Below are positions 690 to 63,208 of a stretch of 64,000 nt of DNA, in pieces; positions within the stretch are counted from its first letter, which is position 1; each line of letters begins with the position of its first letter. The notes below the pieces were generated by a model. It was not told the DNA's origin, made no database searches, and worked only from the letters and a program-made list of their open reading frames with translations. The position numbers were made by a program, and so were the translations under genes. The stretch lies in the sequence record LR756502.1, one strand, 5' to 3'.

Positions 690-913
690 TAATAAGATAC
701 CAAATTTCTGGAAAATATATCAATCATTAATAGATGAGTGGGTAGCTGATAATAGAGAAATCACTTGTAATGAGGACTATGAAGTAGCTATTTTATATAC
801 ATTGGAAAGAGTATATGAAATGACAAAAAAAGGAGAAATTTAAAATAAATTTGGTGGAATTAAAACTTTACCATATATTTGTACTAATAATAAAAAAAGG
901 GACTTAAAAAGTT

Positions 914-922
914 TAATATATA
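914..922 (+). promoter_or_regulatory. Putative phage promoter TAATATATA (representative copy)
   Basis: Same 9-mer a short distance before starts at 3096, 11492, 17625, 27987, 29141, 46450, 53018, and on the minus strand before 10995, 15899, 24258, 40486. Confidence 0.7.
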
Positions 923-929
923 AGAAATA

Positions 930-1087
930 ATGAGAACAATTAACAAACATAAACATTTTAGTAAATTGAATAAGTGGTTTAGTAACCATCGATTCGAAGC
1001 TAAAGCGTTTTGCTAAATTGTTAATAAACATAAAGGCATAAACTTACTTGAACTCTCGAATTGAAAAATTCGAGAGTTTTTTATTTT
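930..1087 (+). promoter_or_regulatory. Attenuator 1: leader MRTINKHKHFSKLNKWFSNHRFEAKAFC (930-1016) + terminator (1051-1087)
   Basis: His x3, Phe x4, Trp, Lys x5; CGATTCGA (990-997) can pair with terminator arm TCGAATTG (1056-1063); followed by His/Phe/Trp/Lys tRNAs and trpS. Confidence 0.8.
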
Positions 1088-1096
1088 AAATTATAT

Positions 1097-1170
1097 GGTG
1101 GTTATCGTCCAAAGGAAGGATGTGTCCCTGTGAAGGACAAGATGTGGTATCGAGATCCATTAACCACCCA
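1097..1170 (+). tRNA. tRNA-His(GUG), encoded G-1
   Basis: GGTGGTTA/TAACCACC acceptor, TGTCC-CTGTGAA-GGACA. Confidence 0.85.
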
Positions 1171-1173
1171 AAA

Positions 1174-1246
1174 GGATCCTAAGCTAACTTGGTAGAAGCG
1201 TATGCCTGAAGAGCATGAGGATTTGGTTCGAAACCAAAAGGATCCA
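1174..1246 (+). tRNA. tRNA-Phe(GAA)
   Basis: GGATCCT/AGGATCC, TATGC-CTGAAGA-GCATG. Confidence 0.85.
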
Positions 1247-1256
1247 CAAAAAATAT

Positions 1257-1333
1257 GGTGATTGTAGCTCAATTGGTAGAGCGCTTGACTGTGAGTCAAG
1301 AGGTAGTGGGATCGAATCCCACCTTTCACCCCA
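1257..1333 (+). tRNA. tRNA-His(GUG)
   Basis: CTTGA-CTGTGAG-TCAAG, encoded CCA. Confidence 0.85.
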
Positions 1334-1335
1334 AT

Positions 1336-1407
1336 GGAGGATTAGCTGAGATGGTTTAGCGTCTGGTTGAAGACCAGAAGACCTCGGTTCGATTCCGGGA
1401 TTCTCCA
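1336..1407 (+). tRNA. tRNA-Phe(GAA)
   Basis: TCTGG-TTGAAGA-CCAGA, GGAGGAT/ATTCTCC. Confidence 0.85.
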
Positions 1408-1416
1408 CAAAAATAT

Positions 1417-1497
1417 ACACTCGCTCATTGGCGTGACCAGTCGGTTCCCCGATAAAGCGTAAGCGTGGTTAAGAGTTCGAATCTCTTCGGGTGTTCA
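1417..1497 (+). ncRNA. tRNA-like RNA with no assignable anticodon
   Basis: ACACTCG/CGGGTGT acceptor and AAGAG-TTCGAAT-CTCTT T-arm, but middle arm GTCGG-TTCC-CCGAT has a 4-nt loop. Confidence 0.55.
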
Positions 1498-1500
1498 AAT

Positions 1501-1571
1501 ACGTGATACTGGCAAGGTGTCGGTCAGGTCTCCAAAACCTCGATGGGTGGGTTCAATTCCTACATCACGTG
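1501..1571 (+). tRNA. tRNA-Trp(CCA)
   Basis: ACGTGAT/ATCACGT, AGGT-CTCCAAA-ACCT. Confidence 0.85.
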
Positions 1572-1589
1572 CTAAAAGAAAGAAAAGAA

Positions 1590-1647
1590 ATGAAAACAAA
1601 ACGAAAATATAAAAGATAACTGCTCACTGGATTTTCCATGGGCAGTA
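1590..1647 (+). promoter_or_regulatory. Lys-rich mini-ORF MKTKRKYKR (1590-1619) + hairpin, directly before three tRNA-Lys
   Basis: AAA at codons 2,4,6,8; hairpin ACTGCTCA..TGGA-TTT-TCCA..TGGGCAGT, no U-tract. Confidence 0.45.
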
Positions 1648-1660
1648 TAATATAACACAA

Positions 1661-1746
1661 GTGTCCGTGAGTGAATGGTTGAAACTACCAGTCTTTTAAA
1701 CTGGCTACCGAAAGGTACAATGTGGGTTCGAATCCCACCGGGCACA
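1661..1746 (+). tRNA. tRNA with Lys(UUU) anticodon and long variable arm
   Basis: CCAGT-CTTTTAA-ACTGG; V-arm TACC-GAAA-GGTA; A73. Confidence 0.85.
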
Positions 1747-1758
1747 CAAACATACAAT

Positions 1759-1847
1759 GTTTCTGTCGCTCAGCGGTCGAGAGCATCGGTCTTTTAAACC
1801 GAAGGATTTATATCCCATCGTGAGTTCAAATCTCACCAGGAACACCA
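1759..1847 (+). tRNA. tRNA with Lys(UUU) anticodon and long variable arm
   Basis: TCGGT-CTTTTAA-ACCGA; V-arm GGAT-TTAT-ATCC; encoded CCA. Confidence 0.85.
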
Positions 1848-1848
1848 A

Positions 1849-1929
1849 GGATCTGTCGCTTAGCGGCTATAGCAACTGGCTCTTAACCAGTCGAGAAATC
1901 AACCGTGGGTTCGAGTCCCACCAGATCCA
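1849..1929 (+). tRNA. tRNA-Lys(CUU) with 13-nt variable region
   Basis: ACTGG-CTCTTAA-CCAGT; variable CGAGAAATCAACC. Confidence 0.85.
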
Positions 1930-1933
1930 CAAA

Positions 1934-2260
1934 ATGATACTATACAGACCAGTAAACGGAAAGGAATTGGATTTGATAATCGAAAGTGGATATACAAAAT
2001 TCCCACCAAGATTACCAGAGCAACCAATCTTTTATCCAGTATTAAATAAAGAATATGCAATACAAATAACTAAGGAGTGGAACATTCCAGCCTATGGAGT
2101 TGGATATGTAACTGAATTTGATGTAGATGATACTTATATCAGTCAGTTTACAACTAAAAATGTAGGTGGTGAAATTCATAATGAACTATGGATACCATCT
2201 GAAAGATTGGAGGAGTTTAATAATAAAATTATAGGAAAAATTAGAATTATACAGATATGA
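1934..2260 (+). CDS. Conserved protein of the LYRPV..FPPRLPEQPIFYPV family (often labelled ADP-ribosylation/crystallin J1)
   Basis: True start is ATG 1934, after the tRNAs; motif recognised from memory. Confidence 0.55.
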   Translation: MILYRPVNGKELDLIIESGYTKFPPRLPEQPIFYPVLNKEYAIQITKEWNIPAYGVGYVTEFDVDDTYISQFTTKNVGGEIHNELWIPSERLEEFNNKIIGKIRIIQI

Positions 2261-2976
2261 AATATCTCATAGGGATCCAGCCAACTGGAAGAATACATAT
2301 TGGTAACTATTTAGGTTGCTTAAAGAAAGGACTCGATTTACAGAATCAAGGACATGAAGTTACATTTTTAATTGCTAACTACCATTCACTAACAACTGAT
2401 AGTTATACTGATGAAACTGAAAAGGAATTAGTTAGACTTGGATGTAAGAACATTAAAAGACAGACTCCTGAATATACTGAGTTGTTTTTCAAACTATGTT
2501 GCAAGATAAATTTAGCAACATTACAGAAGATGCCTCAATTCAAGGATAAGAAAGGGACAGTTGATTTTGATATGGGTATTTTATTATATCCTGTTCTAAT
2601 GACAGCTGATATTATGATGAATGATCCAGATGTTGTTATAGTTGGTAAAGACCAAGTTCCACATTTAGATTTATGTAATGATATTTCTAAAAGAGTTGGT
2701 GGTAAAGAATATAAGTATGAATTTGGTGATGTTGATAAGATAATGTCACTTAGTGATCCTACTAAGAAAATGTCTAAATCATTAGGTGAGAAACATGTTC
2801 TTTATCTATTTGATGAGGATTATAAAAAGAAAATTAGAAGTGCCAATGCGAATGAAGAGGGTTTAGAAAATCTTAAGAAACTTGGAAGAAGTCTCGGAGT
2901 CGATATTGATAAGTGTGTATTGAATGTTGAGTTGAAAGATGCAATTGCTCAGAAGATGGAAGAAATTTTCATTTAG
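2257..2976 (+). CDS. trpS: Tryptophanyl-tRNA synthetase, shortened (239 aa)
   Basis: GIQPTG..HIGNY, YPVLMTADI, VGKDQ.PHL, KMSKS. Confidence 0.9.
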   Translation: MKYLIGIQPTGRIHIGNYLGCLKKGLDLQNQGHEVTFLIANYHSLTTDSYTDETEKELVRLGCKNIKRQTPEYTELFFKLCCKINLATLQKMPQFKDKKGTVDFDMGILLYPVLMTADIMMNDPDVVIVGKDQVPHLDLCNDISKRVGGKEYKYEFGDVDKIMSLSDPTKKMSKSLGEKHVLYLFDEDYKKKIRSANANEEGLENLKKLGRSLGVDIDKCVLNVELKDAIAQKMEEIFI

Positions 2977-3419: not shown

Positions 3420-3555
3420 ATGAAAACAACTATTAAAAATACAAGTTCACGTAGTCGCTCGAGTAAATCGGGTGAGGTTCGACTGTATTCATAATAGTTA
3501 GTATAAACATATTGTGTAAACCCTCGAACTTAACCGTTTGAGGGTTTTTTGTTTT
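3420..3555 (+). promoter_or_regulatory. Attenuator 2: leader MKTTIKNTSSRSRSSKSGEVRLYS (3420-3494) + terminator (3518-3555)
   Basis: Ser x7, Arg x3; GGTTCGA (3476-3482) pairs with TCGAACT (3524-3530); followed by Arg/Ser tRNAs. Confidence 0.8.
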
Positions 3556-4225: not shown

Positions 4226-4528
4226 ATGGAAAATATTGTAATAGGCATATGTCCTATTTGTGAAAGAGAAATGTGGAAAGATAAGTTTGTCAATAGACAT
4301 CACTTTCTTCCAAAATCGAAAGGTGGGAGAGAAACAGAGTGGCTTCATAAAATTTGTCATAGGAAAATTCATTCTATTTTTACAAACACAGAGTTAGCAA
4401 AAGAGTATAATAACCCGGAGGTTGTAAGGGCTCATCCAGAGATTGATAGATTTATTAAATGGATATCTAAAAAGGATCCAGATTTCTATGATGGAAATAC
4501 AACACATAATAAAAAAGGAAGACTATGA
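4226..4528 (+). CDS. HNH endonuclease family protein
   Basis: CPIC..NRHHFLPKSKGG..LHKICHRKIH. Confidence 0.8.
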   Translation: MENIVIGICPICEREMWKDKFVNRHHFLPKSKGGRETEWLHKICHRKIHSIFTNTELAKEYNNPEVVRAHPEIDRFIKWISKKDPDFYDGNTTHNKKGRL

Positions 4529-16570: not shown

Positions 16571-16675
16571 TGCGGGGTAGGGAAGTGGTCATCCCGAGAC
16601 GCTCGTTTTTGATTCTTAAATGATGAAGAAGTGAGATAACGTTTAGATCGTTGGTTCGAATCCAACCCATCGCTA
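16571..16675 (+). tRNA. Initiator-Met-like tRNA interrupted by a 31-nt insert in the anticodon loop
   Basis: AGACG-CTC[31 nt]ATAA-CGTTT; intact D- and T-arms; U1:U72 mismatch. Confidence 0.65.
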
Positions 16676-16834: not shown

Positions 16835-16909
16835 TGCGGAGGGGTGAAACGGAATTCATGTAAGTCTCATAAACTTTTTCGATAATTGGTTCGACTCCAA
16901 TCTCCGCTA
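16835..16909 (+). tRNA. tRNA-Met(CAU), initiator-like (1:72 mismatch)
   Basis: AAGT-CTCATAA-ACTT, TGCGGAG/CTCCGCT. Confidence 0.8.
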
Positions 16910-16947
16910 CAAAAGAATAAAAACAAAATATTAATAAATTAGAAATA

Positions 16948-17100
16948 ATGAATAGATTTACTAACATAGAAACAATAGGGTACACAGGGTATGAGGGCGC
17001 GTATAGCGAACTTTTAGTCAGACCTTTGTCTATGTTATAATGTAAAATATTATACAATTTGATAAAATCCAGTCTGATTAATTTCAGACTGGATTTTTTG
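16948..17100 (+). promoter_or_regulatory. Attenuator 4: leader MNRFTNIETIGYTGYEGAYSELLVRPLSML (16948-17040) + terminator (17064-17100)
   Basis: Tyr x3, Glu x3; TAGTCAGAC (17015-17023) pairs with GTCTGATTA (17072-17080); followed by Glu/Tyr tRNAs. Confidence 0.8.
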
Positions 17101-17160: not shown

Positions 17161-17245
17161 GCTACGGTATGCAAATTGGACTAAGCGCCCAGACTTTCAA
17201 TCTGGTCACGAAAGTGGATTGCGGGTTCGAATCCCGTCCGTAGTA
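17161..17245 (+). tRNA. tRNA with Glu(UUC) anticodon, Leu-like body and variable arm
   Basis: CCAGA-CTTTCAA-TCTGG; V-arm CAC-GAAA-GTG. Confidence 0.8.
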
Positions 17246-17259
17246 CAAATATAAAGCAC

Positions 17260-17655: not shown

Positions 17656-17797
17656 ATGAAAAATTTACATAACATATCAGTTGGAGTTATAGCGATAGGC
17701 GCGGGGAGCGTTTGTCTGTGGCTGAACTATGTTTCGTAAATAGTAAAATATTTATCATAAACTAACCCAGTCACAAAATGACTGGGTTTTTTATTTA
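17656..17797 (+). promoter_or_regulatory. Attenuator 5: leader MKNLHNISVGVIAIGAGSVCLWLNYVS (17656-17739) + terminator (17764-17797)
   Basis: Ile ATA x3, Gly x3, Ala x2; TGTGGCTG (17717-17724) pairs with CAGTCACA (17768-17775); followed by Ile(UAU)/Gly/Ala tRNAs. Confidence 0.8.
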
Positions 17798-18177: not shown

Positions 18178-18804
18178 ATGTATCATACAATTTATAAAAT
18201 AACAAATATACTAAATGATAAAATTTATATAGGCAAACACTCAACAGAAAATTTAGACGATAGTTATATGGGGTCTGGTTCTTATATTAGAAGATCCATA
18301 AAAAAATATGGAGTTGAGAATTTTAAGAAAGAGATTTTGTTTATATTTGATAGCTCAGAAGAGGCATATAAAAAAGAAATAGAAATTGTTAATGAAGACT
18401 TTGTATTAAGAACAGACACTTATAATATTATAACTGGAGGTGATTCATTTGAGGCAATTAACTCTAATGAAGAACTTAGAAAGGAAAAAAATAAAAGGGC
18501 AGCAGTATCAATGAATAGAATTAATTGGACAAATCCTGAGTTTATAAAAAGAAACCATGATAGAATGTCTGAACAAAATAAGAGATTATTTAATGAGGGA
18601 ATACTTAAAGCACCTGATTGGACAGGTAGAAAACACAAGGATGAAACCAAAATTAAACAAAGTATTTCAGCTAAAAAAAGAATTAGAGAGAAAAATAAAC
18701 ATTGTTGGGTATATCATTACGTAGATGGTAATAAAAAAATAAAAATATCCGAAATAGATACATATCTAATCAATGGATGGATAAAGGGAAGAATAATGAA
18801 ATGA
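18178..18804 (+). CDS. GIY-YIG (Seg-like) homing endonuclease inside the tRNA array
   Basis: IYKITN..KIYIGKHST..YMGSG; NUMOD3-like GRKHKDETK; true start ATG 18178. Confidence 0.9.
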   Translation: MYHTIYKITNILNDKIYIGKHSTENLDDSYMGSGSYIRRSIKKYGVENFKKEILFIFDSSEEAYKKEIEIVNEDFVLRTDTYNIITGGDSFEAINSNEELRKEKNKRAAVSMNRINWTNPEFIKRNHDRMSEQNKRLFNEGILKAPDWTGRKHKDETKIKQSISAKKRIREKNKHCWVYHYVDGNKKIKISEIDTYLINGWIKGRIMK

Positions 18805-29157: not shown

Positions 29158-29327
29158 ATGAAAACAATGAATTTAAATATGAATCTAAACACACTGACAG
29201 TGGTGAATAATACGTTATGTATTAGACCTTGTGAGGGTTTTGATCTATTTAATGATTTGTAGTATGGCATAAACATTAATAAAGGATAATCAAAACCCTC
29301 AGTCAAAAACTGAGGGTTTTTTGTTTT
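29158..29327 (+). promoter_or_regulatory. Attenuator 6: leader MKTMNLNMNLNTLTVVNNTLCIRPCEGFDLFNDL (29158-29262) + terminator (29292-29327)
   Basis: Asn x7, Leu x6, Thr x4, Val x2; TGAGGGTTTTGAT (29232-29244) is the exact complement of ATCAAAACCCTCA (29289-29301). Confidence 0.85.
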
Positions 29328-29724: not shown

Positions 29725-29803
29725 CGGTACATACCGAGCCACACTGATAATGTGGATATTCGTAGCGGTGTTGTAAACGTGGGTTCAAATCCCTCTGTAC
29801 CGA
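29725..29803 (+). tRNA. D-armless tRNA-like RNA, Ile(GAU) anticodon
   Basis: CGGTACA/TGTACCG; CCACA-CTGATAA-TGTGG; variable region CGTAGCGGTGTTGTAAAC. Confidence 0.7.
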
Positions 29804-29808
29804 CAAAT

Positions 29809-29887
29809 GCCCTTGTAGTCGAGTCAGTTTTCTAAACTGTTAATCGTAATGGAAAGGAAGATGCAGGTTCGAATCCTGTCTAGGGTA
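29809..29887 (+). tRNA. D-armless tRNA-like RNA, Arg(UCU) anticodon
   Basis: CAGT-TTTCTAA-ACTG; variable region with CGTAATGG; normal T-arm. Confidence 0.6.
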
Positions 29888-30191: not shown

Positions 30192-30274
30192 GGTACCGTG
30201 GCCGAGCGGAGTCGTAAGACGAGAGGCAGTGATCTGCAAAATCACTCACACTGGTTCAATCCCAGTCGGTACCT
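30192..30274 (+). tRNA. tRNA-Cys(GCA) with extra hairpin in the D-loop
   Basis: GTGAT-CTGCAAA-ATCAC, U73; GTC-GTAA-GAC inside the D-loop. Confidence 0.8.
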
Positions 30275-30557: not shown

Positions 30558-30637
30558 GCCAATGTGGCTCAGCGGCGACAGCACCGCTTTTGTAAAGCGG
30601 AACACAAACAGCGGGGGTTCGAGTCCCTCCATTGGCT
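30558..30637 (+). tRNA. tRNA-Thr(UGU) with 12-nt unpaired variable loop
   Basis: CCGCT-TTTGTAA-AGCGG. Confidence 0.85.
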
Positions 30638-30642
30638 CAAAT

Positions 30643-30959: not shown

Positions 30960-31394
30960 ATGGTAAAATATGACAAAGAGGAATTTATAAGTGTTTGTGA
31001 GGACAGTCCTACAATGGCTAGAGCGGCTTCTAAATTAGGTATTCATTTTAATACCTTTAGAAGGATAGCTGTTAAGTTGAATTGTTATAGAACAAATCAG
31101 TCCGGAAAGGGTTTAACTAAAAAGAGCGATAGAGGAACACCTTTGTCAGAAATTCTTGAGGGAAAACATCCACAATTTCAATCATTTAAATTGAAAAATA
31201 AATTGATAAAGGAAGGAATAAAAGAGAATAGATGTGAGGTTTGTAATATAAGTGAATGGAATGGGAAAGTGATAAATTGTGAACTAGACCATATAGATGG
31301 TAATAGCAGAAATCACAGATTGGAAAATCTAAGAATACTGTGTCCAAATTGTCACTCACAAACTGATACATTTAGAGCAAAGAATATAAAATAA
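30960..31394 (+). CDS. HNH endonuclease inside the tRNA array
   Basis: CEVC..ELDHIDGNSRNHRLENLRILCPNCH. Confidence 0.9.
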   Translation: MVKYDKEEFISVCEDSPTMARAASKLGIHFNTFRRIAVKLNCYRTNQSGKGLTKKSDRGTPLSEILEGKHPQFQSFKLKNKLIKEGIKENRCEVCNISEWNGKVINCELDHIDGNSRNHRLENLRILCPNCHSQTDTFRAKNIK

Positions 31395-31610
31395 ATGGAG
31401 TATCTATGTGATAATGCAAGACATCTAGTTTGTAAACCTTATTCAATTGAGAATCTACATAAGATGGCCGAGGAACTAAACATTAAGAGATGTTGGTTTC
31501 ATAAGAATCATTATGATATTCCAAAAAGAAGAATAGATGAAATTACAATTAAGTGTAAACTAATTTCATCTAAAGAGATAGTAGATATTATAAATATTGA
31601 TATAGCTTAA
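31395..31610 (+). CDS. Small conserved protein (DUF4031-like)
   Basis: HLV..SIENLHKMAEEL.IKR.WF..HYDIP. Confidence 0.55.
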   Translation: MEYLCDNARHLVCKPYSIENLHKMAEELNIKRCWFHKNHYDIPKRRIDEITIKCKLISSKEIVDIINIDIA

Positions 31611-49957: not shown

Positions 49958-50119
49958 ATGAAAAACTTAATCTTAAATATCGCAATTCAAGTACAACGTC
50001 AAGTTGTTGTCGATCAGGATCAACCGGATACGACTGAGGCTAATTGCGATTTTATAAGAGAGTAAAATAATACTTGAATTATACAAACCCAGTTAGTCTA
50101 TGATTAACTGGGTTTTTTT
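49958..50119 (+). promoter_or_regulatory. Attenuator 7: leader MKNLILNIAIQVQRQVVVDQDQPDTTEANCDL (49958-50056) + terminator (50085-50119)
   Basis: Asp x4, Gln x5, Pro; GGCTAATTG (50038-50046) pairs with CAGTTAGTC (50090-50098); followed by Pro/Asp tRNAs. Confidence 0.75.
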
Positions 50120-50902: not shown

Positions 50903-50936
50903 CAAGAGAGAAACAAAATATTAATAAATAGAAATT

Positions 50937-51052
50937 ATGACAACTTCATTTCAGCAACAACAGCAACAACAAATTAATCGAACAGATTGATGTGGAATGA
51001 TATTGTTTAAATATTACACCCGTTAGTCTGAGGAGATTAACGGGTTTTTTAT
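50937..51052 (+). promoter_or_regulatory. Attenuator 8: poly-Gln leader MTTSFQQQQQQQINRTD (50937-50990) + terminator (51018-51052)
   Basis: 7 consecutive CAG/CAA codons; CAGATTGATG (50983-50992) pairs with CGTTAGTCTG (51021-51030); followed by 4 tRNA-Gln and glnS. Confidence 0.9.
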
Positions 51053-51130: not shown

Positions 51131-51214
51131 TGCGGAATCCCATAATGGCATTGGTCCTGACTTTGAATCAGGTGGAATGAAAATTCTGTGTAGGTTCGAA
51201 TCCTACTTCCGCAT
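51131..51214 (+). tRNA. tRNA-Gln(UUG) with long variable arm
   Basis: CCTGA-CTTTGAA-TCAGG; V-arm GGAAT-GAAA-ATTCT. Confidence 0.85.
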
Positions 51215-51219
51215 CAAAT

Positions 51220-51397: not shown

Positions 51398-52999
51398 ATG
51401 AATTTCATTGAAGATAAAATAATAGAGAAAAATAACTTAGATAAACTAAAGTTAAGATTTCCACCAGAAAACTCAGGTTATATCCACCTGGGTCATGCCA
51501 AATCTATCTGTCTTAATTTTGGACTAGCATTAAAATATAACAGACCTTGTAATTTAAGGTTTGATGATACTAACCCATCCAATGAATCTGACGATTTCAC
51601 AAGATCAATAATTGAAGATATCAAATGGTTAGGATTCACACCATCTGAGACTCTATATACCTCTGATTATTTCTCTGAACTATACAACTATGCAATCATC
51701 CTAATTAGAAAAGGATTAGCTTACGTTGATGATTCAACATCAGAAGAAATTGCCTTATTAAAAGGAACACCAACATCTGTTGGTAAAGATTCTCCATATA
51801 AATCAAGAACTATCGAAGAGAACTTAGACTTATTCAATAGAATGAAATTAGGTGAATTCACAGAGGGTTCTAAAACACTTAGAGCAAACATTGATATGAC
51901 TTCATCTAATATGATATTGAGAGATCCTATCATATATAGAATGATTAATAAGACACACCACAATGTTGGTGATGCTTGGAAGATATATCCAATGTATGAT
52001 TTTGCACATCCATTGTCTGACTATATTGAAGGTATAACTGACTCTTTGTGTACTATGGAATTTGAGGTACATTTGCCTTTATATATGTGGGTATTGAAAA
52101 ATTGTGATTTAAAAAATTCTTTACCGGAAGAAACTGAGTTTGCTCGATTGAACATTGATTTTACAATAATGAGTAAGAGAAAACTAAAGAGATTAGTTGA
52201 AGAAGGATTTGTTTCTGGATGGGATGATCCAAGAATGCCTACTATCTCTGGATTAAGAAGAAGAGGATTTACACCAAAAAGTATTAGAGATTTTTGTGAA
52301 GAAATTTCTGTAACAAGAAGTAACTCTATAATTAGTCATAAAGTATTAGAAGAGTGTTTAAGAACAGATTTGAATAAGTCAGCTAATAGAATGATGGGTG
52401 TTATTGACCCTGTTAAATTGACTATTACTAATTGGGTTGGTGGTACTGAATGGGTTGAAATAGAGAATAACCCAGAAGATCCAAACGCTGGAACTAGATT
52501 GGTTCCTTTTACTGGAGTGTTGTGGATTGAGATAGAAGACTTTAGATTAGAAGCTGATAAGAAATTTCACAGATTAAAGTTGAATGAAGAAGTTAGATTA
52601 AAAGGTGGATACGTTGTTAAAGCAACCGATGTTGTTATGAATGGTGATGTTATATCTGAGATAAAATGTACATTCGATCCTAACTCTAAATCTGGAATGG
52701 TTTTAGATAGAAAGGTAAAAGGAGTAATTCACTGGGTATCTGTTGAACACGCTGTTAACTTAGATGTTAATGAGTATGATACTTTATTTACTGAATCTAA
52801 TCCTGATGATTTAGAAGATTTTACAACTTGTATTAATCCTAATTCTTTAATTGTGAATACAAAGGCTATGTTTGAACCACATATAATGGCACTTGAAGTT
52901 GGTGTTCCGGTTCAAATGATGAGAAAAGGATATTATTGTCTTGACAAGGATGGTGTTTTTAACAAGACCGTTTCATTGAAAGAAGGTTGGAAAGGATAA
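51398..52999 (+). CDS. glnS: Glutaminyl-tRNA synthetase
   Basis: RFPPENSGYIHLGHAK, LRFDDTNP, YPMYDFAH, SKRKL, GWDDPRMPTI.GLRRRG, VKGVIHWVS. Confidence 0.95.
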   Translation: MNFIEDKIIEKNNLDKLKLRFPPENSGYIHLGHAKSICLNFGLALKYNRPCNLRFDDTNPSNESDDFTRSIIEDIKWLGFTPSETLYTSDYFSELYNYAIILIRKGLAYVDDSTSEEIALLKGTPTSVGKDSPYKSRTIEENLDLFNRMKLGEFTEGSKTLRANIDMTSSNMILRDPIIYRMINKTHHNVGDAWKIYPMYDFAHPLSDYIEGITDSLCTMEFEVHLPLYMWVLKNCDLKNSLPEETEFARLNIDFTIMSKRKLKRLVEEGFVSGWDDPRMPTISGLRRRGFTPKSIRDFCEEISVTRSNSIISHKVLEECLRTDLNKSANRMMGVIDPVKLTITNWVGGTEWVEIENNPEDPNAGTRLVPFTGVLWIEIEDFRLEADKKFHRLKLNEEVRLKGGYVVKATDVVMNGDVISEIKCTFDPNSKSGMVLDRKVKGVIHWVSVEHAVNLDVNEYDTLFTESNPDDLEDFTTCINPNSLIVNTKAMFEPHIMALEVGVPVQMMRKGYYCLDKDGVFNKTVSLKEGWKG

Positions 53000-62038: not shown

Positions 62039-62154
62039 GGCCTTTTCGTCTAGTGGTTCTTCCTTGTGAAGATACATTGATAGTCTTTGACTTCCAGTGT
62101 AAGGACGGGTGTCTTTTCAGACACAGAACAGCGGTTCGACCCCGTTAAAGGCTA
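62039..62154 (+). tRNA. tRNA-Glu-type gene with 43-nt D-loop insert and 8-nt anticodon loop
   Basis: Same body as 63101; insert 62059-62101; GTGT-CTTTTCAG-ACAC. Confidence 0.7.
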
Positions 62155-62159
62155 CAATT

Positions 62160-63098
62160 AAAAAGTCTACCCCTTCGTCCTCGATGGGTAATATCCAAAT
62201 AAAGACGCAAATAGGATGTTTCAGACTTTGTACCAAGCTTCGACTTCGGTTGTTGTGTAGGTAGGGCGGCTTATAGTCCTTAAATAAACCTCGAAAGGGG
62301 GATAAAGTGAGTATCATTGCTAAATGATATTTGCGGTTTGAACTGAAAGGTTTGAGCTCGAGTAAGCAAGCGAAATACCACAAAATCTGTAGTAATGAGG
62401 GTAACTCCGTAGTGAAACGATTTTGTGATTGGGTGAACGTAGGTCACTTGATTGACTTCGGAAGAAGAACAGGAATAATTCGTAGGAATTTTGTGAGAAA
62501 TATCGGCTTAACCGGCTAGTATGATTGCGAGTTCTAATTCAAGAGATGTCTTAAAGTTGAAAGACAATTCTTCTACCAGGTGGTGCTGTTGAAGAACATT
62601 AATCTGACTACCAAGTTGGTAGGTATCATCGCAAGGTGGTATCGTGATGAAGAAATCTTAAAGAATTGTGATGGAGGCATCACACAGAGTAGTTCAGTAT
62701 TTTGTCTGTCAAAAACGGATGAAGCTGAGAGGAGACCACTACTTTGACTTAATCTACAAGCACAAAAAATTTACTTATGATGTAAAAACTATAACTAAAT
62801 CAAAAGTGTTTCCTAGTTATCAATGAAAATTGACTACTTAGCCGTGAGTTGTTCACGGTCACATTAAGCCCGAAAGGCGGATGTGATTTCAGAGAAAAGC
62901 TTATAGAGGGTCGAACCTCTAATCAGTTCGCAAGACTGAATAAGTGGAGTAAATGGAGAATAGTTGATAACTTAAGGAGTGGTTGGTCTAACTAACCGTC
63001 ATTGACAAGTTACTACTCAAAAGGTAGTGGATAGATTTGGGAATAAATAATCCAAACAGAGGCTTGTTGTTTTAGGATGTAATCTCAGTCCTTTTTTT
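62160..63098 (+). ncRNA. Large (~0.9 kb) structured ncRNA, GOLLD/ROOL-class candidate
   Basis: No credible ORF, higher GC, many hairpins (CCTC-GAAA-GGGG, GAG-GGTAA-CTC, TATCATC-GCAA-GGTGGTA, GTGATG/CATCAC, CCGTGA/TCACGG, AGAGG/CCTCT), flanked by tRNAs, ends in U-tract. Family not verified. Confidence 0.7.
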
Positions 63099-63100
63099 AT

Positions 63101-63173
63101 GGCCTTTTCGTCTAGTGGTTAGGACGAATATCTTTTCAGATATTAAACAGCGGTTCGAATCCGTTAAAGGCTA
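63101..63173 (+). tRNA. tRNA-Glu-type gene with 8-nt anticodon loop
   Basis: GGCCTTT/AAAGGCT; AATAT-CTTTTCAG-ATATT. Confidence 0.75.
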
Positions 63174-63177
63174 CAAC

Positions 63178-63208
63178 AACCCACCGATCTGGTGGGTTTT
63201 TTTATTTT
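63178..63208 (+). terminator. Intrinsic terminator
   Basis: AACCCACC-GATCT-GGTGGGTT followed by T-tract. Confidence 0.85.

Follow-up and report, generated by a model that had tools for sequence, protein, structure and literature searches.

The stretch analysed here (the window) comprises 64,000 nucleotides of sequence record LR756502.1, from a 642-kb uncultured phage. Near its start lies a 28-codon open reading frame, which is followed by a 13-bp intrinsic terminator and, 18 nt later, by a cluster of tRNA genes for His, Phe, Trp and Lys. The cluster is followed by an open reading frame of unknown function and a truncated trpS-like gene. This arrangement (unit 1) is one of seven analogous units in the window, which together cover all 20 amino acids (Table 1).

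Table 1. Positions of the features of unit 1 and of the six further units in the window.
Positions	Strand	Feature	Details
850-881	+	Bacteroidota sigma-A-type promoter (motif match)	-33 TTTG (850-853), 20-nt spacer, -7 TATATTTG (874-881)
912-922	+	TTTAATATATA box	8 nt before the leader ATG; possibly a second (phage-type) promoter or an initiation context (function inferred)
930-1016	+	Leader ORF L1	MRTINKHKHFSKLNKWFSNHRFEAKAFC; 3 His, 4 Phe, 1 Trp, 5 Lys
956-971	+	Region 1	Codons 10-14, inside the run of regulatory codons; pairs with region 2
990-1005	+	Region 2	Inside the ORF; pairs with region 1 or, as the antiterminator, with the terminator 5' arm
1050-1086	+	Intrinsic terminator	Arms 1050-1062 and 1067-1079, loop GAAA, U-tract; 13 bp, -16.5 kcal/mol (1050-1079)
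1098-1168	+	tRNA-His(GUG)	Rfam tRNA 44.6 bits, anticodon loop CUGUGAA; missed by ARAGORN
1174-1247	+	tRNA-Phe(GAA)	
1258-1333	+	tRNA-His(GUG)	
1336-1408	+	tRNA-Phe(GAA)	
about 1420-1496	+	tRNA-like remnant	Acceptor stem and T-arm intact, D and anticodon region aberrant
1500-1572	+	tRNA-Trp(CCA)	Relaxed ARAGORN; anticodon loop CUCCAAA in the Rfam alignment
1590-1619	+	Mini-ORF MKTKRKYKR	4 Lys in 9 codons
1619-1646	+	Hairpin abutting the mini-ORF stop codon	-14.2 kcal/mol, no U-tract
1661-1747	+	tRNA-Lys(UUU)	The three tRNA-Lys genes (1661-1930) each have a 9-14-nt extra variable arm
1759-1847	+	tRNA-Lys(UUU)	
1849-1930	+	tRNA-Lys(CUU)	
1934-2260	+	orf108	Unknown function; starts 4 nt after the last tRNA-Lys
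2257-2976	+	trpS-like gene	TrpRS catalytic core of 239 aa, about the C-terminal third missing
3420-3547	+	Unit 2: leader MKTTIKNTSSRSRSSKSGEVRLYS plus terminator	Followed by tRNA Arg(ACG), Ser(UGA) x2, Ser(GCU), Ser(GGA), Arg(UCG)
16948-17097	+	Unit 3: leader MNRFTNIETIGYTGYEGAYSELLVRPLSML plus terminator	Followed by tRNA Glu, Tyr, Glu, Tyr, Glu
17656-17788	+	Unit 4: leader MKNLHNISVGVIAIGAGSVCLWLNYVS plus terminator	Followed by tRNA Ile(UAU), Gly x4, Ala x2
29158-29320	+	Unit 5: leader MKTMNLNMNLNTLTVVNNTLCIRPCEGFDLFNDL plus terminator	Antiterminator 13 bp; followed by orf67 and then tRNAs for Asn, Ile, Arg(UCU), Leu, Val, Cys, Thr and Met
49958-50115	+	Unit 6: leader MKNLILNIAIQVQRQVVVDQDQPDTTEANCDFIRE plus terminator	Followed by Pro and Asp tRNAs, then unit 7
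50937-51045	+	Unit 7: leader MTTSFQQQQQQQINRTD plus terminator	Followed by tRNA-Gln x4 and glnS (51398-52999)

An earlier note on this sequence proposed that a leader with this His, Phe, Trp and Lys content integrates four amino-acid signals for the matching tRNAs and trpS, with an antiterminator pairing of 8 bp. We confirm the observation, and the sequence-level predictions of this model hold. The note missed the tRNA-like remnant, the Lys-rich mini-ORF with its hairpin, the truncation of trpS and the six analogous units.

Genes and signals of unit 1

The motif TAnnTTTG (full pattern TTTG-N20-TAnnTTTG) is present 53-66 nt upstream of the ATG in 52 of 53 unit-1 orthologs. It appears to correspond to the promoter consensus of Bacteroides, and the paper describing this genome predicts a Bacteroidetes host. 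The assignment rests on a motif match only. The box in front of the leader ATG is found at -17 to -14 in 47 of 53 orthologs. It also precedes the leaders of units 4 and 5, several ORFs and a tRNA-Met gene. The short distance between the terminator and the first tRNA leaves no room for another promoter.

The stretch 1409-1499 is not a credible tRNA. It has no Rfam hit, and ARAGORN calls a tRNA there only at ps70. The sister genome has a first tRNA-Trp at this place, and we treat the stretch as a remnant.

The Lys tRNAs sit behind an additional conserved mini-ORF and hairpin. The mini-ORF is conserved as MKTK[LMRI]KYK[RQ] between the Trp and Lys tRNAs in at least 15 distinct related loci, and the hairpin structure is conserved with three unrelated stem sequences. 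To understand the hairpin, we tested whether either arm pairs alternatively with the 5' part of the downstream tRNA-Lys or with the upstream 60 nt. Cognate and swapped energies are indistinguishable. The hairpin has no U-tract and is not a canonical terminator.

For orf108 we found no Pfam, NCBIfam, PHROG or PDB match, and it was not found in any fetched relative. The last gene is a class-I Trp/Tyr aaRS (PF00579, 131.7 bits). Its best-scoring family is trpS, far above tyrS, and the KMSKS motif is present. However, it scores 132.7 bits against TIGR00233 (trpS), below the cut-off of 176.75, matching profile positions 7-220 of 328, and a full-length match including the C-terminal anticodon-binding domain was not obtained. 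It aligns to residues 7-233 of the 348-aa TrpRS 2yy5. The gene is linked to the unit only in the closest relatives; among the fetched loci (numbered with L) it is present at 98-99% identity in L019, L023/L050 and L059 only. One related locus (L011) and one unrelated, high-GC locus (L013) carry glnS with no leader or tRNAs. Hence the linkage of glnS is specific to the clade and not universal.

Leader composition and alternative helices

Of the 27 residues after the Met in leader 1, 13 are His, Phe, Trp or Lys, against 16% expected from the long ORFs of the window (binomial p=1e-4). Across the seven leaders and seven clusters the true assignment is the best of 5,040 permutations, both in the window and independently in the 634-kb sister genome. 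The same holds at the codon/anticodon level. All three Arg codons in leader 2 are CGN, which make up 12% of Arg codons in the long ORFs of the phage, and they match tRNA-Arg ACG/UCG. All three Ile codons in leader 4 are AUA, matching tRNA-Ile(UAU). The two Cys codons and one AGA codon of leader 5 match tRNA-Cys(GCA) and tRNA-Arg(UCU), which were found afterwards. However, leaders 3, 4 and 6 are only weakly enriched for their own cluster when taken alone (p = 0.1, 0.095 and 0.3).

The leader is conserved in related huge phages. The core HK[HN]FSK..KWFS occurs in 59 distinct unit-1 orthologs in viral and metagenome contigs, and all with enough downstream DNA are followed by His, Phe, Trp and Lys tRNAs. 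In all fetched loci there are 92 distinct leaders. Where clusters are rearranged, leader composition changes to match. A merged Tyr-Glu-Ile-Gly-Ala cluster goes with the leader ...IEAIGYAYEAG..., Gln tRNAs inside the Pro/Asp cluster go with ...PQIQDQDQP..., and a Leu/Glu/Arg/Ile cluster goes with ...LRQLVLEQLIE.... The leaders are read as codons: conserved Ser columns in unit-2 leaders switch between AGU and UCA/UCG. The unit-1 leader core is absent from 185,579 species representatives of cellular genomes, so there is no sign of a host origin. Among other deposited phages only the two sister genomes match.

To test the RNA structure, we aligned 39 orthologs. The 1:2 helix (columns 27-42 with 66-79) is 95.2% paired, against 37-51% when slid, with 20 double-change cells (2 of 500 shuffles). 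The 2:3 helix, the antiterminator (columns 64-75 with 151-161), is 90.5% paired, with 6 compensatory pairs and 50 cells with compensatory change (0 of 500 shuffles). The 3:4 helix, the terminator, is 93.5% paired with 8 compensatory pairs (0 of 500 shuffles). Slid controls overall are 5-63% paired.

Cognate antiterminator duplexes are more stable than swapped ones (-12.4 against -8.5 kcal/mol, 0 of 20,000). The swap test is also significant for units 2, 3 and 7. It was not significant for unit 5, with only 4 distinct arms, and units 4 and 6 had too few distinct arms. For the 1:2 helix the swap test is only marginal (396 of 20,000), because that helix is mostly conserved.

In the window the 1:2 hairpin has -16.3 kcal/mol. 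The antiterminator of this copy pairs CGAUUCGA(A) with (U)UCGAAUUG over 8-9 bp at -11.0 kcal/mol, in agreement with the earlier note. This is short compared with the terminator, so it can win only kinetically. When folded with no ribosome, the 1:2 helix forms and region 3 stays free. With a ribosome over codons 6-19 the minimum-energy fold switches to 2:3. In units 5 and 7, however, the antiterminator forms even without a ribosome in the equilibrium model, and thus these units may differ in their default state.

Proposed attenuation by the ribosome and alternative explanations

To explain these observations, we propose a ribosome-mediated (leader-peptide) transcription attenuator whose cargo is a tRNA operon. 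We infer that host RNA polymerase starts at the Bacteroidota-type promoter and transcribes the leader. If His, Phe, Trp and Lys codons are decoded promptly, the ribosome clears region 1. Region 1 then pairs with region 2, the terminator forms and transcription stops before the first tRNA. Alternatively, if any of these codons is decoded slowly because its charged tRNA is scarce, the ribosome stalls on or near region 1. Region 2 stays free and pairs with the 5' arm of the terminator as it emerges, and the polymerase reads through into the tRNAs, orf108 and the trpS-like gene. Three of the 13 cognate codons in leader 1 (F22, K25, F27) lie on or after region 2, where stalling would not help. The products are the very tRNAs whose shortage is sensed, so the circuit would be a direct negative feedback on decoding capacity, working as an OR gate over four amino acids. 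Six further units would apply the same logic to the other 16 amino acids. Although all evidence is computational, the phage is uncultivated, and both stalling in vivo and the direction of the response are inferred, we consider this explanation very likely.

Other explanations are possible but unlikely. The units could be translation-coupled terminators that report general translation status, for example ribosome availability early versus late in infection, with an incidental bias in leader composition. An ORF overlapping an antiterminator arm would respond to any slowing of the leader ribosome, and the weak enrichment of leaders 3, 4 and 6 fits this view. It does not fit the best-of-5,040 assignment in two genomes, the choice of rare CGN Arg codons and of AUA Ile codons to match the downstream anticodons, or leaders that follow cluster rearrangements. 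It is even less likely that the hairpins are constitutive, partly leaky terminators or 5' processing and stability elements that set a fixed tRNA dosage behind untranslated chance ORFs. AT-rich DNA does give many short ORFs, and there are no expression data. Yet the ORF is kept open with a conserved ATG in the 59 orthologs while the position of the stop varies, Ser codons switch between codon families at conserved positions, two alternative helices that compete with the terminator co-vary with it, and a promoter motif sits immediately upstream of a unit that otherwise contains no gene.

We regard two further readings as very unlikely. The leader RNA might sense uncharged tRNA directly or bind another ligand or protein without translation, as T-box elements link tRNA status to translation-related genes in other bacteria. 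However, no T-box or other cis-regulatory family reaches threshold in the window, and no T-box hit appears even at E<=1 in 880-1960. The element between the ATG and the terminator is only about 120 nt, is fully accounted for by the ORF and three simple helices, and its conserved feature is codon identity. The small ORFs might also encode functional micropeptides that lie next to terminators by coincidence, since the N-terminal motif MKT/MRT and the core HKHFSKS.KWFS are conserved. Yet the C-terminal halves and the lengths vary freely (28-39 codons) while the RNA pairing is maintained, and seven unrelated peptides each mirror the isotypes of the adjacent tRNAs.

More tentatively, the phage may carry a genome-wide sensor network for decoding capacity. 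At least seven attenuators would together monitor codons for all 20 amino acids, at isoacceptor resolution, and release the matching tRNAs (plus GlnRS and a TrpRS-like enzyme) only when decoding of those codons falters. This would be the first case of tRNA genes under ribosome-mediated attenuation. It could serve as an inducible counter-measure to loss of host tRNAs during infection, whether through host anticodon-nuclease defences, host shut-off or a mismatch in codon usage. This possibility remains unproven, and we hold it to be less likely than not.

Relation to known systems

Phage tRNA genes are usually treated as a fixed supplement to the decoding capacity of the host. If these attenuators work as their anatomy indicates, huge phages regulate tRNA supply on demand, cluster by cluster, and use the ribosome itself as the sensor. 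This would extend a mechanism previously tied to amino-acid biosynthesis and a few aaRS genes to tRNA genes and to viruses. It bears on the question why large phages carry so many tRNAs and when they use them, including possible responses to host defences that deplete tRNAs. The leaders would also be compact, natural sensors for individual isoacceptors, which could be reused as reporters.

Clustered tRNA genes, often interspersed with homing endonucleases, are known from T4, T5, mycobacteriophages and other huge phages, where they are thought to supplement host decoding or to replace depleted host tRNAs. To our knowledge, and within the literature we searched, which cannot prove novelty, no leader-peptide control of such arrays has been described, nor did we find a description of tRNA genes as cargo or of near-complete codon coverage. 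The paper describing this genome does not mention leaders or attenuation.

T-box riboswitches follow the same physiological logic: tRNA charging status controls a terminator/antiterminator choice upstream of genes that restore charged tRNA. A T-box, however, binds uncharged tRNA directly and needs no translation.

The E. coli pheM-pheST attenuator and the His leader peptide upstream of hisS paralogs in bacilli (PMC2965389) also control a component of the translation apparatus for the same amino acid, and units 1 and 7 likewise carry trpS-like and glnS. Those systems control the synthetase only. Here the tRNAs themselves are the main and conserved cargo, and the trpS-like gene is a lineage-specific passenger.

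The E. coli ilvGMEDA (ilvL) and thr leaders mix codons for several amino acids (Ile/Leu/Val; Thr/Ile), so that a shortage of any one relieves termination. Here four amino acids are mixed in unit 1 and about eight in unit 5 (Asn, Leu, Thr, Val, Ile, Met, Cys, Arg). The set is defined by the tRNAs in the operon, not by a shared biosynthetic pathway.

With the E. coli trp operon leader (trpL) and the other classical attenuators (hisL, pheL, thrL, leuL) unit 1 shares a short ORF with clustered regulatory codons, four RNA regions forming mutually exclusive 1:2, 2:3 and 3:4 helices, an intrinsic terminator directly before the regulated genes and, as proposed here, read-out by ribosome position. There is no sequence or covariance-model similarity: no curated Rfam leader family (His_leader, Trp_leader, Thr_leader, Leu_leader, Bacteroid-trp and others) appears in the gathering scan of the window, and the best score is His_leader at 20.6 bits against a gathering score of 49 (E=0.99). 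Region 2 lies well inside the ORF, not just after the stop codon. The element lies in a phage of a predicted Bacteroidota host, and its cargo is tRNA genes rather than amino-acid biosynthesis enzymes.

Unit 1 and the other leader units of the window

LR756502.1 is a 642,428-bp uncultured phage genome, and the window is identical to positions 372001-436000 of this record. The paper that reported the genome places the genomes above 634 kb in the 'Mahaphage' clade with predicted Bacteroidetes hosts, and does not contain the words 'leader' or 'attenuat' (PMC7162821). With default ARAGORN and Rfam we found 44 tRNAs in the window, and about 58 with relaxed settings, all on the + strand. No N stretches occur in the regions used.

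The leader ORF of unit 1 (L1) encodes MRTINKHKHFSKLNKWFSNHRFEAKAFC. It contains 3 His, 4 Phe, 1 Trp and 5 Lys, as the earlier note had stated. This amounts to 13 of 27 residues, compared to 16% expected from the long ORFs of the window (p=1e-4). The leader ORF is followed by a 13-bp hairpin (-16.5 kcal/mol) with a U-tract, and only 18 nt later the tRNA genes begin. The last tRNA-Lys gene is followed by orf108 and then by a TrpRS catalytic core. No other + strand terminator lies between 1079 and 3518. The coordinates of all features are collected in the table.

Features of the window and their coordinates
Feature	Coordinates	Remarks
YqeY-like ORF	64-456	Stand-alone, just upstream of unit 1; Pfam 49.7 bits
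Promoter motif	850-881	Bacteroidota-type
Leader ORF L1	930-1016	Followed by His, Phe, Trp, Lys tRNAs
Terminator hairpin	1050-1062 with 1067-1079	
tRNA-His(GUG)	1098-1168	
tRNA-Phe(GAA)	1174-1247	
tRNA-His(GUG)	1258-1333	
tRNA-Phe(GAA)	1336-1408	
tRNA-like remnant	about 1420-1496	Acceptor stem and T-arm intact, D and anticodon region aberrant
tRNA-Trp(CCA)	1500-1572	
Lys-rich mini-ORF	1590-1619	MKTKRKYKR; with its hairpin 1590-1646
tRNA-Lys(UUU)	1661-1747	
tRNA-Lys(UUU)	1759-1847	
tRNA-Lys(CUU)	1849-1930	
orf108	1934-2260	No recognisable family
trpS-like gene	2257-2976	239 aa; lacks roughly the C-terminal third
Leader L2	3420-3494	Followed by Ser, Arg tRNAs
Met-type tRNA	16572-16674	Insertion of about 30 nt
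Met-type tRNA	16838-16910	
Boxes upstream of leaders 3 and 7	16922-16947 and 50912-50936	ACAAAATATTAATAAAT(T)AGAAAT, nearly identical
Leader L3	16948-17040	Followed by Glu, Tyr tRNAs
Leader L4	17656-17739	Followed by Ile, Gly, Ala tRNAs
Leader L5	29158-29262	Followed by Asn, Leu, Val, Ile, Thr, Met, and also Cys(GCA) and Arg(UCU) tRNAs
Leader L6	49958-50065	Followed by Pro, Asp tRNAs
Leader L7	50937-50990	Followed by tRNA-Gln x4, then glnS
Non-canonical tRNAs	1661-1930; 17161-17246; 29725-29887; 30192-30274; 30558-30638; 51131-51215	
Homing-endonuclease-like ORFs	18178-18804; 30960-31394; 31395-31610; 4226-4528	GIY-YIG and HNH (both below the Pfam thresholds) and a DUF4031 ORF (38 bits)
Odd tRNA-like call	62082-62155	
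GOLLD RNA, tRNA and terminator-like hairpin	62685-63205	GOLLD 275 bits; tRNA at 63101-63174

Unit 1 is one of seven such units. We scanned the window automatically for a strong terminator with a short ORF ending within 50 nt upstream and a tRNA downstream. The scan returns exactly seven units, which together cover all 20 amino acids. When we scored each leader by the log-enrichment of the amino acids of a cluster, the true leader-to-cluster assignment was the single best of 5,040 permutations. The same holds for the seven orthologous units of the 634-kb sister genome LR745206.1, whose leaders differ in sequence.

The result also holds at the codon/anticodon level (1 of 5,040). Leader 2 uses only CGN for Arg, although CGN makes up 12% of Arg codons in the long ORFs of the phage and AGA 76%. 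This matches tRNA-Arg(ACG/UCG). Similarly, leader 4 uses only AUA for Ile, matching tRNA-Ile(UAU). L6 is rich in Gln, and L3 contains Ile, Gly and Ala codons. In both cases these are the amino acids of the next unit downstream in the same array, which fits nested gating, although this point is an inference.

Many of the phage tRNAs have non-canonical shapes. Lys, Glu, Gln and Thr tRNAs carry 9-14-nt extra variable arms, Ile(GAU) and Arg(UCU) have a reduced D-arm and a variable arm of about 20 nt, and Cys(GCA) has a 14-nt D-loop insertion. The tRNA that immediately follows the GOLLD RNA has an irregular anticodon loop, and ARAGORN cannot assign an anticodon to it. The tRNA-like remnant in unit 1 sits where the sister genome has an additional tRNA-Trp. 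The homing-endonuclease-like ORFs lie inside or next to the tRNA clusters.

Leader composition in related genomes

To find relatives we used three routes. Two routes used glnS and a small HNH-like ORF as anchors in IMG/VR, and the third searched viral and metagenome contigs with a pattern of 27 specified bases from the leader core. Together they brought in 95 loci, mostly freshwater, from contigs of up to 518 kb. The pattern route yielded 59 distinct unit-1 sequences. Wherever enough DNA follows, His, Phe, Trp and Lys tRNAs are present, in varying order. Across all loci there are 92 distinct leaders. The unit-1 core is absent from 185,579 cellular species genomes, and among deposited phage genomes it occurs only in the two sisters.

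Leader composition follows cluster content, a comparison that the earlier note had proposed. A merged Tyr-Glu-Ile-Gly-Ala cluster has the leader MKTTHKIEAIGYAYEAG.... Pro/Asp clusters that include Gln tRNAs have ...PQIQDQDQP..., and a Leu/Arg/Met/Glu/Ile cluster has ...TLRQLVLEQLIE....

The genes behind the tRNAs are conserved to different degrees. The trpS-like gene is conserved only in the nearest relatives and orf108 only in this genome. By contrast, the order Gln leader, tRNA-Gln, glnS is conserved across the clade. The phage glnS scores best against a GlnRS/YqeY fusion model but lacks that domain. In the related huge phage L011 (IMGVR_UViG_3300042308_001511), direct repeats of about 33-36 nt (GTGCTCACCTCTCGTTTGAGTGCTTCTTCCACC), spaced about 65-70 nt apart, lie upstream of glnS (L011:4302-4600) in a layout that looks like a CRISPR array.

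The Lys-rich mini-ORF, which has four Lys codons among its nine, is followed at its stop codon by a strong hairpin without a U-tract. It is conserved between the Trp and Lys tRNAs in at least 15 distinct loci, with three unrelated stem sequences, and is absent where Lys tRNAs are interspersed with the others. We found no alternative pairing partner for either arm of the hairpin. The mini-ORF looks like a second, Lys-specific control layer of unknown mechanism.

RNA helices, translation and promoters of the leaders

To understand whether the leader RNA can act as a switch, we analyzed an alignment of 39 unit-1 sequences. All three mutually exclusive helices are supported. In the region 1:2 helix 95.2% of cells are paired, with 20 double-change cells (reached by 2 of 500 shuffles). 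In the region 2:3 helix (antiterminator) 90.5% are paired, with compensatory change in 6 pairs and 50 cells (0 of 500 shuffles). In the region 3:4 helix (terminator) 93.5% are paired, with compensatory change in 8 pairs and 72 cells (0 of 500 shuffles). When the partner columns are slid by 1-3 positions, pairing falls to between 5% and 63%. The same three columns of region 2 co-vary with region 1 on one side and with region 3 on the other, and region 3 co-varies with region 4.

In a swap control over 22 distinct terminator arms, cognate antiterminator duplexes average -12.4 kcal/mol compared to -8.5 for non-cognate pairs (0 of 20,000 permutations). The equivalent test is significant for units 2 (0 of 20,000), 3 (164 of 20,000) and 7 (695 of 20,000). 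In the window itself the antiterminator is 8-9 bp (-11.0 kcal/mol), in agreement with the earlier note, which had given 8 bp. We also folded the nascent RNA up to the terminator loop. Without a ribosome the 1:2 hairpin forms and region 3 stays free. When a ribosome footprint covers codons 6-19, the 2:3 helix forms.

Unit-2 leaders were found by adjacency and not by a leader pattern. They keep Ser at conserved columns while switching between AGU and UCA/UCG, and they keep CGC and CGA at the two conserved Arg columns. This pattern is expected for selection on codon identity, not on RNA sequence. In unit 1 the ATG and the reading frame are kept in all orthologs, while the length of the ORF after region 2 varies from 28 to 39 codons.

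A Bacteroidota-type TTTG-N20-TAnnTTTG motif lies 53-66 nt upstream of the ATG in 52 of 53 orthologs, and a TTTTAATATATA box lies at -17 to -14 in 47 of 53. Leaders 3 and 7 lack both and directly follow tRNA genes, hence they probably act as internal gates. These two leaders share a nearly identical upstream box in place of the promoter motifs seen before leaders 1, 2, 4, 5 and 6. The two Met-type tRNAs upstream of leader 3 have no leader of their own, and the first is preceded by a TTTTATAATATATA box about 12 nt upstream.

Proposed mechanism and comparison with known systems

To explain these observations, we propose a mechanism in which stalling in vivo, the kinetics and the polymerase involved are inferred; all our conclusions are computational. 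The leader is transcribed from the host-type promoter. The leading ribosome then either runs through the His/Lys/Phe/Trp codons or stalls on them. If it runs through, regions 1 and 2 pair behind it, and the 3:4 terminator stops the polymerase before tRNA-His. Alternatively, if the ribosome stalls over region 1, region 2 pairs with region 3 and the polymerase continues into the tRNA genes, orf108 and the trpS-like gene. Because the products are the sensed tRNAs, the loop is self-limiting.

We found no earlier description of such an element in the literature searched, and it matches no curated family. The architecture is that of trpL, hisL and pheL, and the multi-amino-acid logic is that of ilvL and thrL. 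The link to the translation apparatus recalls pheM-pheST and the hisS leader peptides (PMC2965389), and the physiological logic resembles T-boxes. What differs is that the cargo is tRNA genes, that the element is in a phage, and that nearly all codons are covered.
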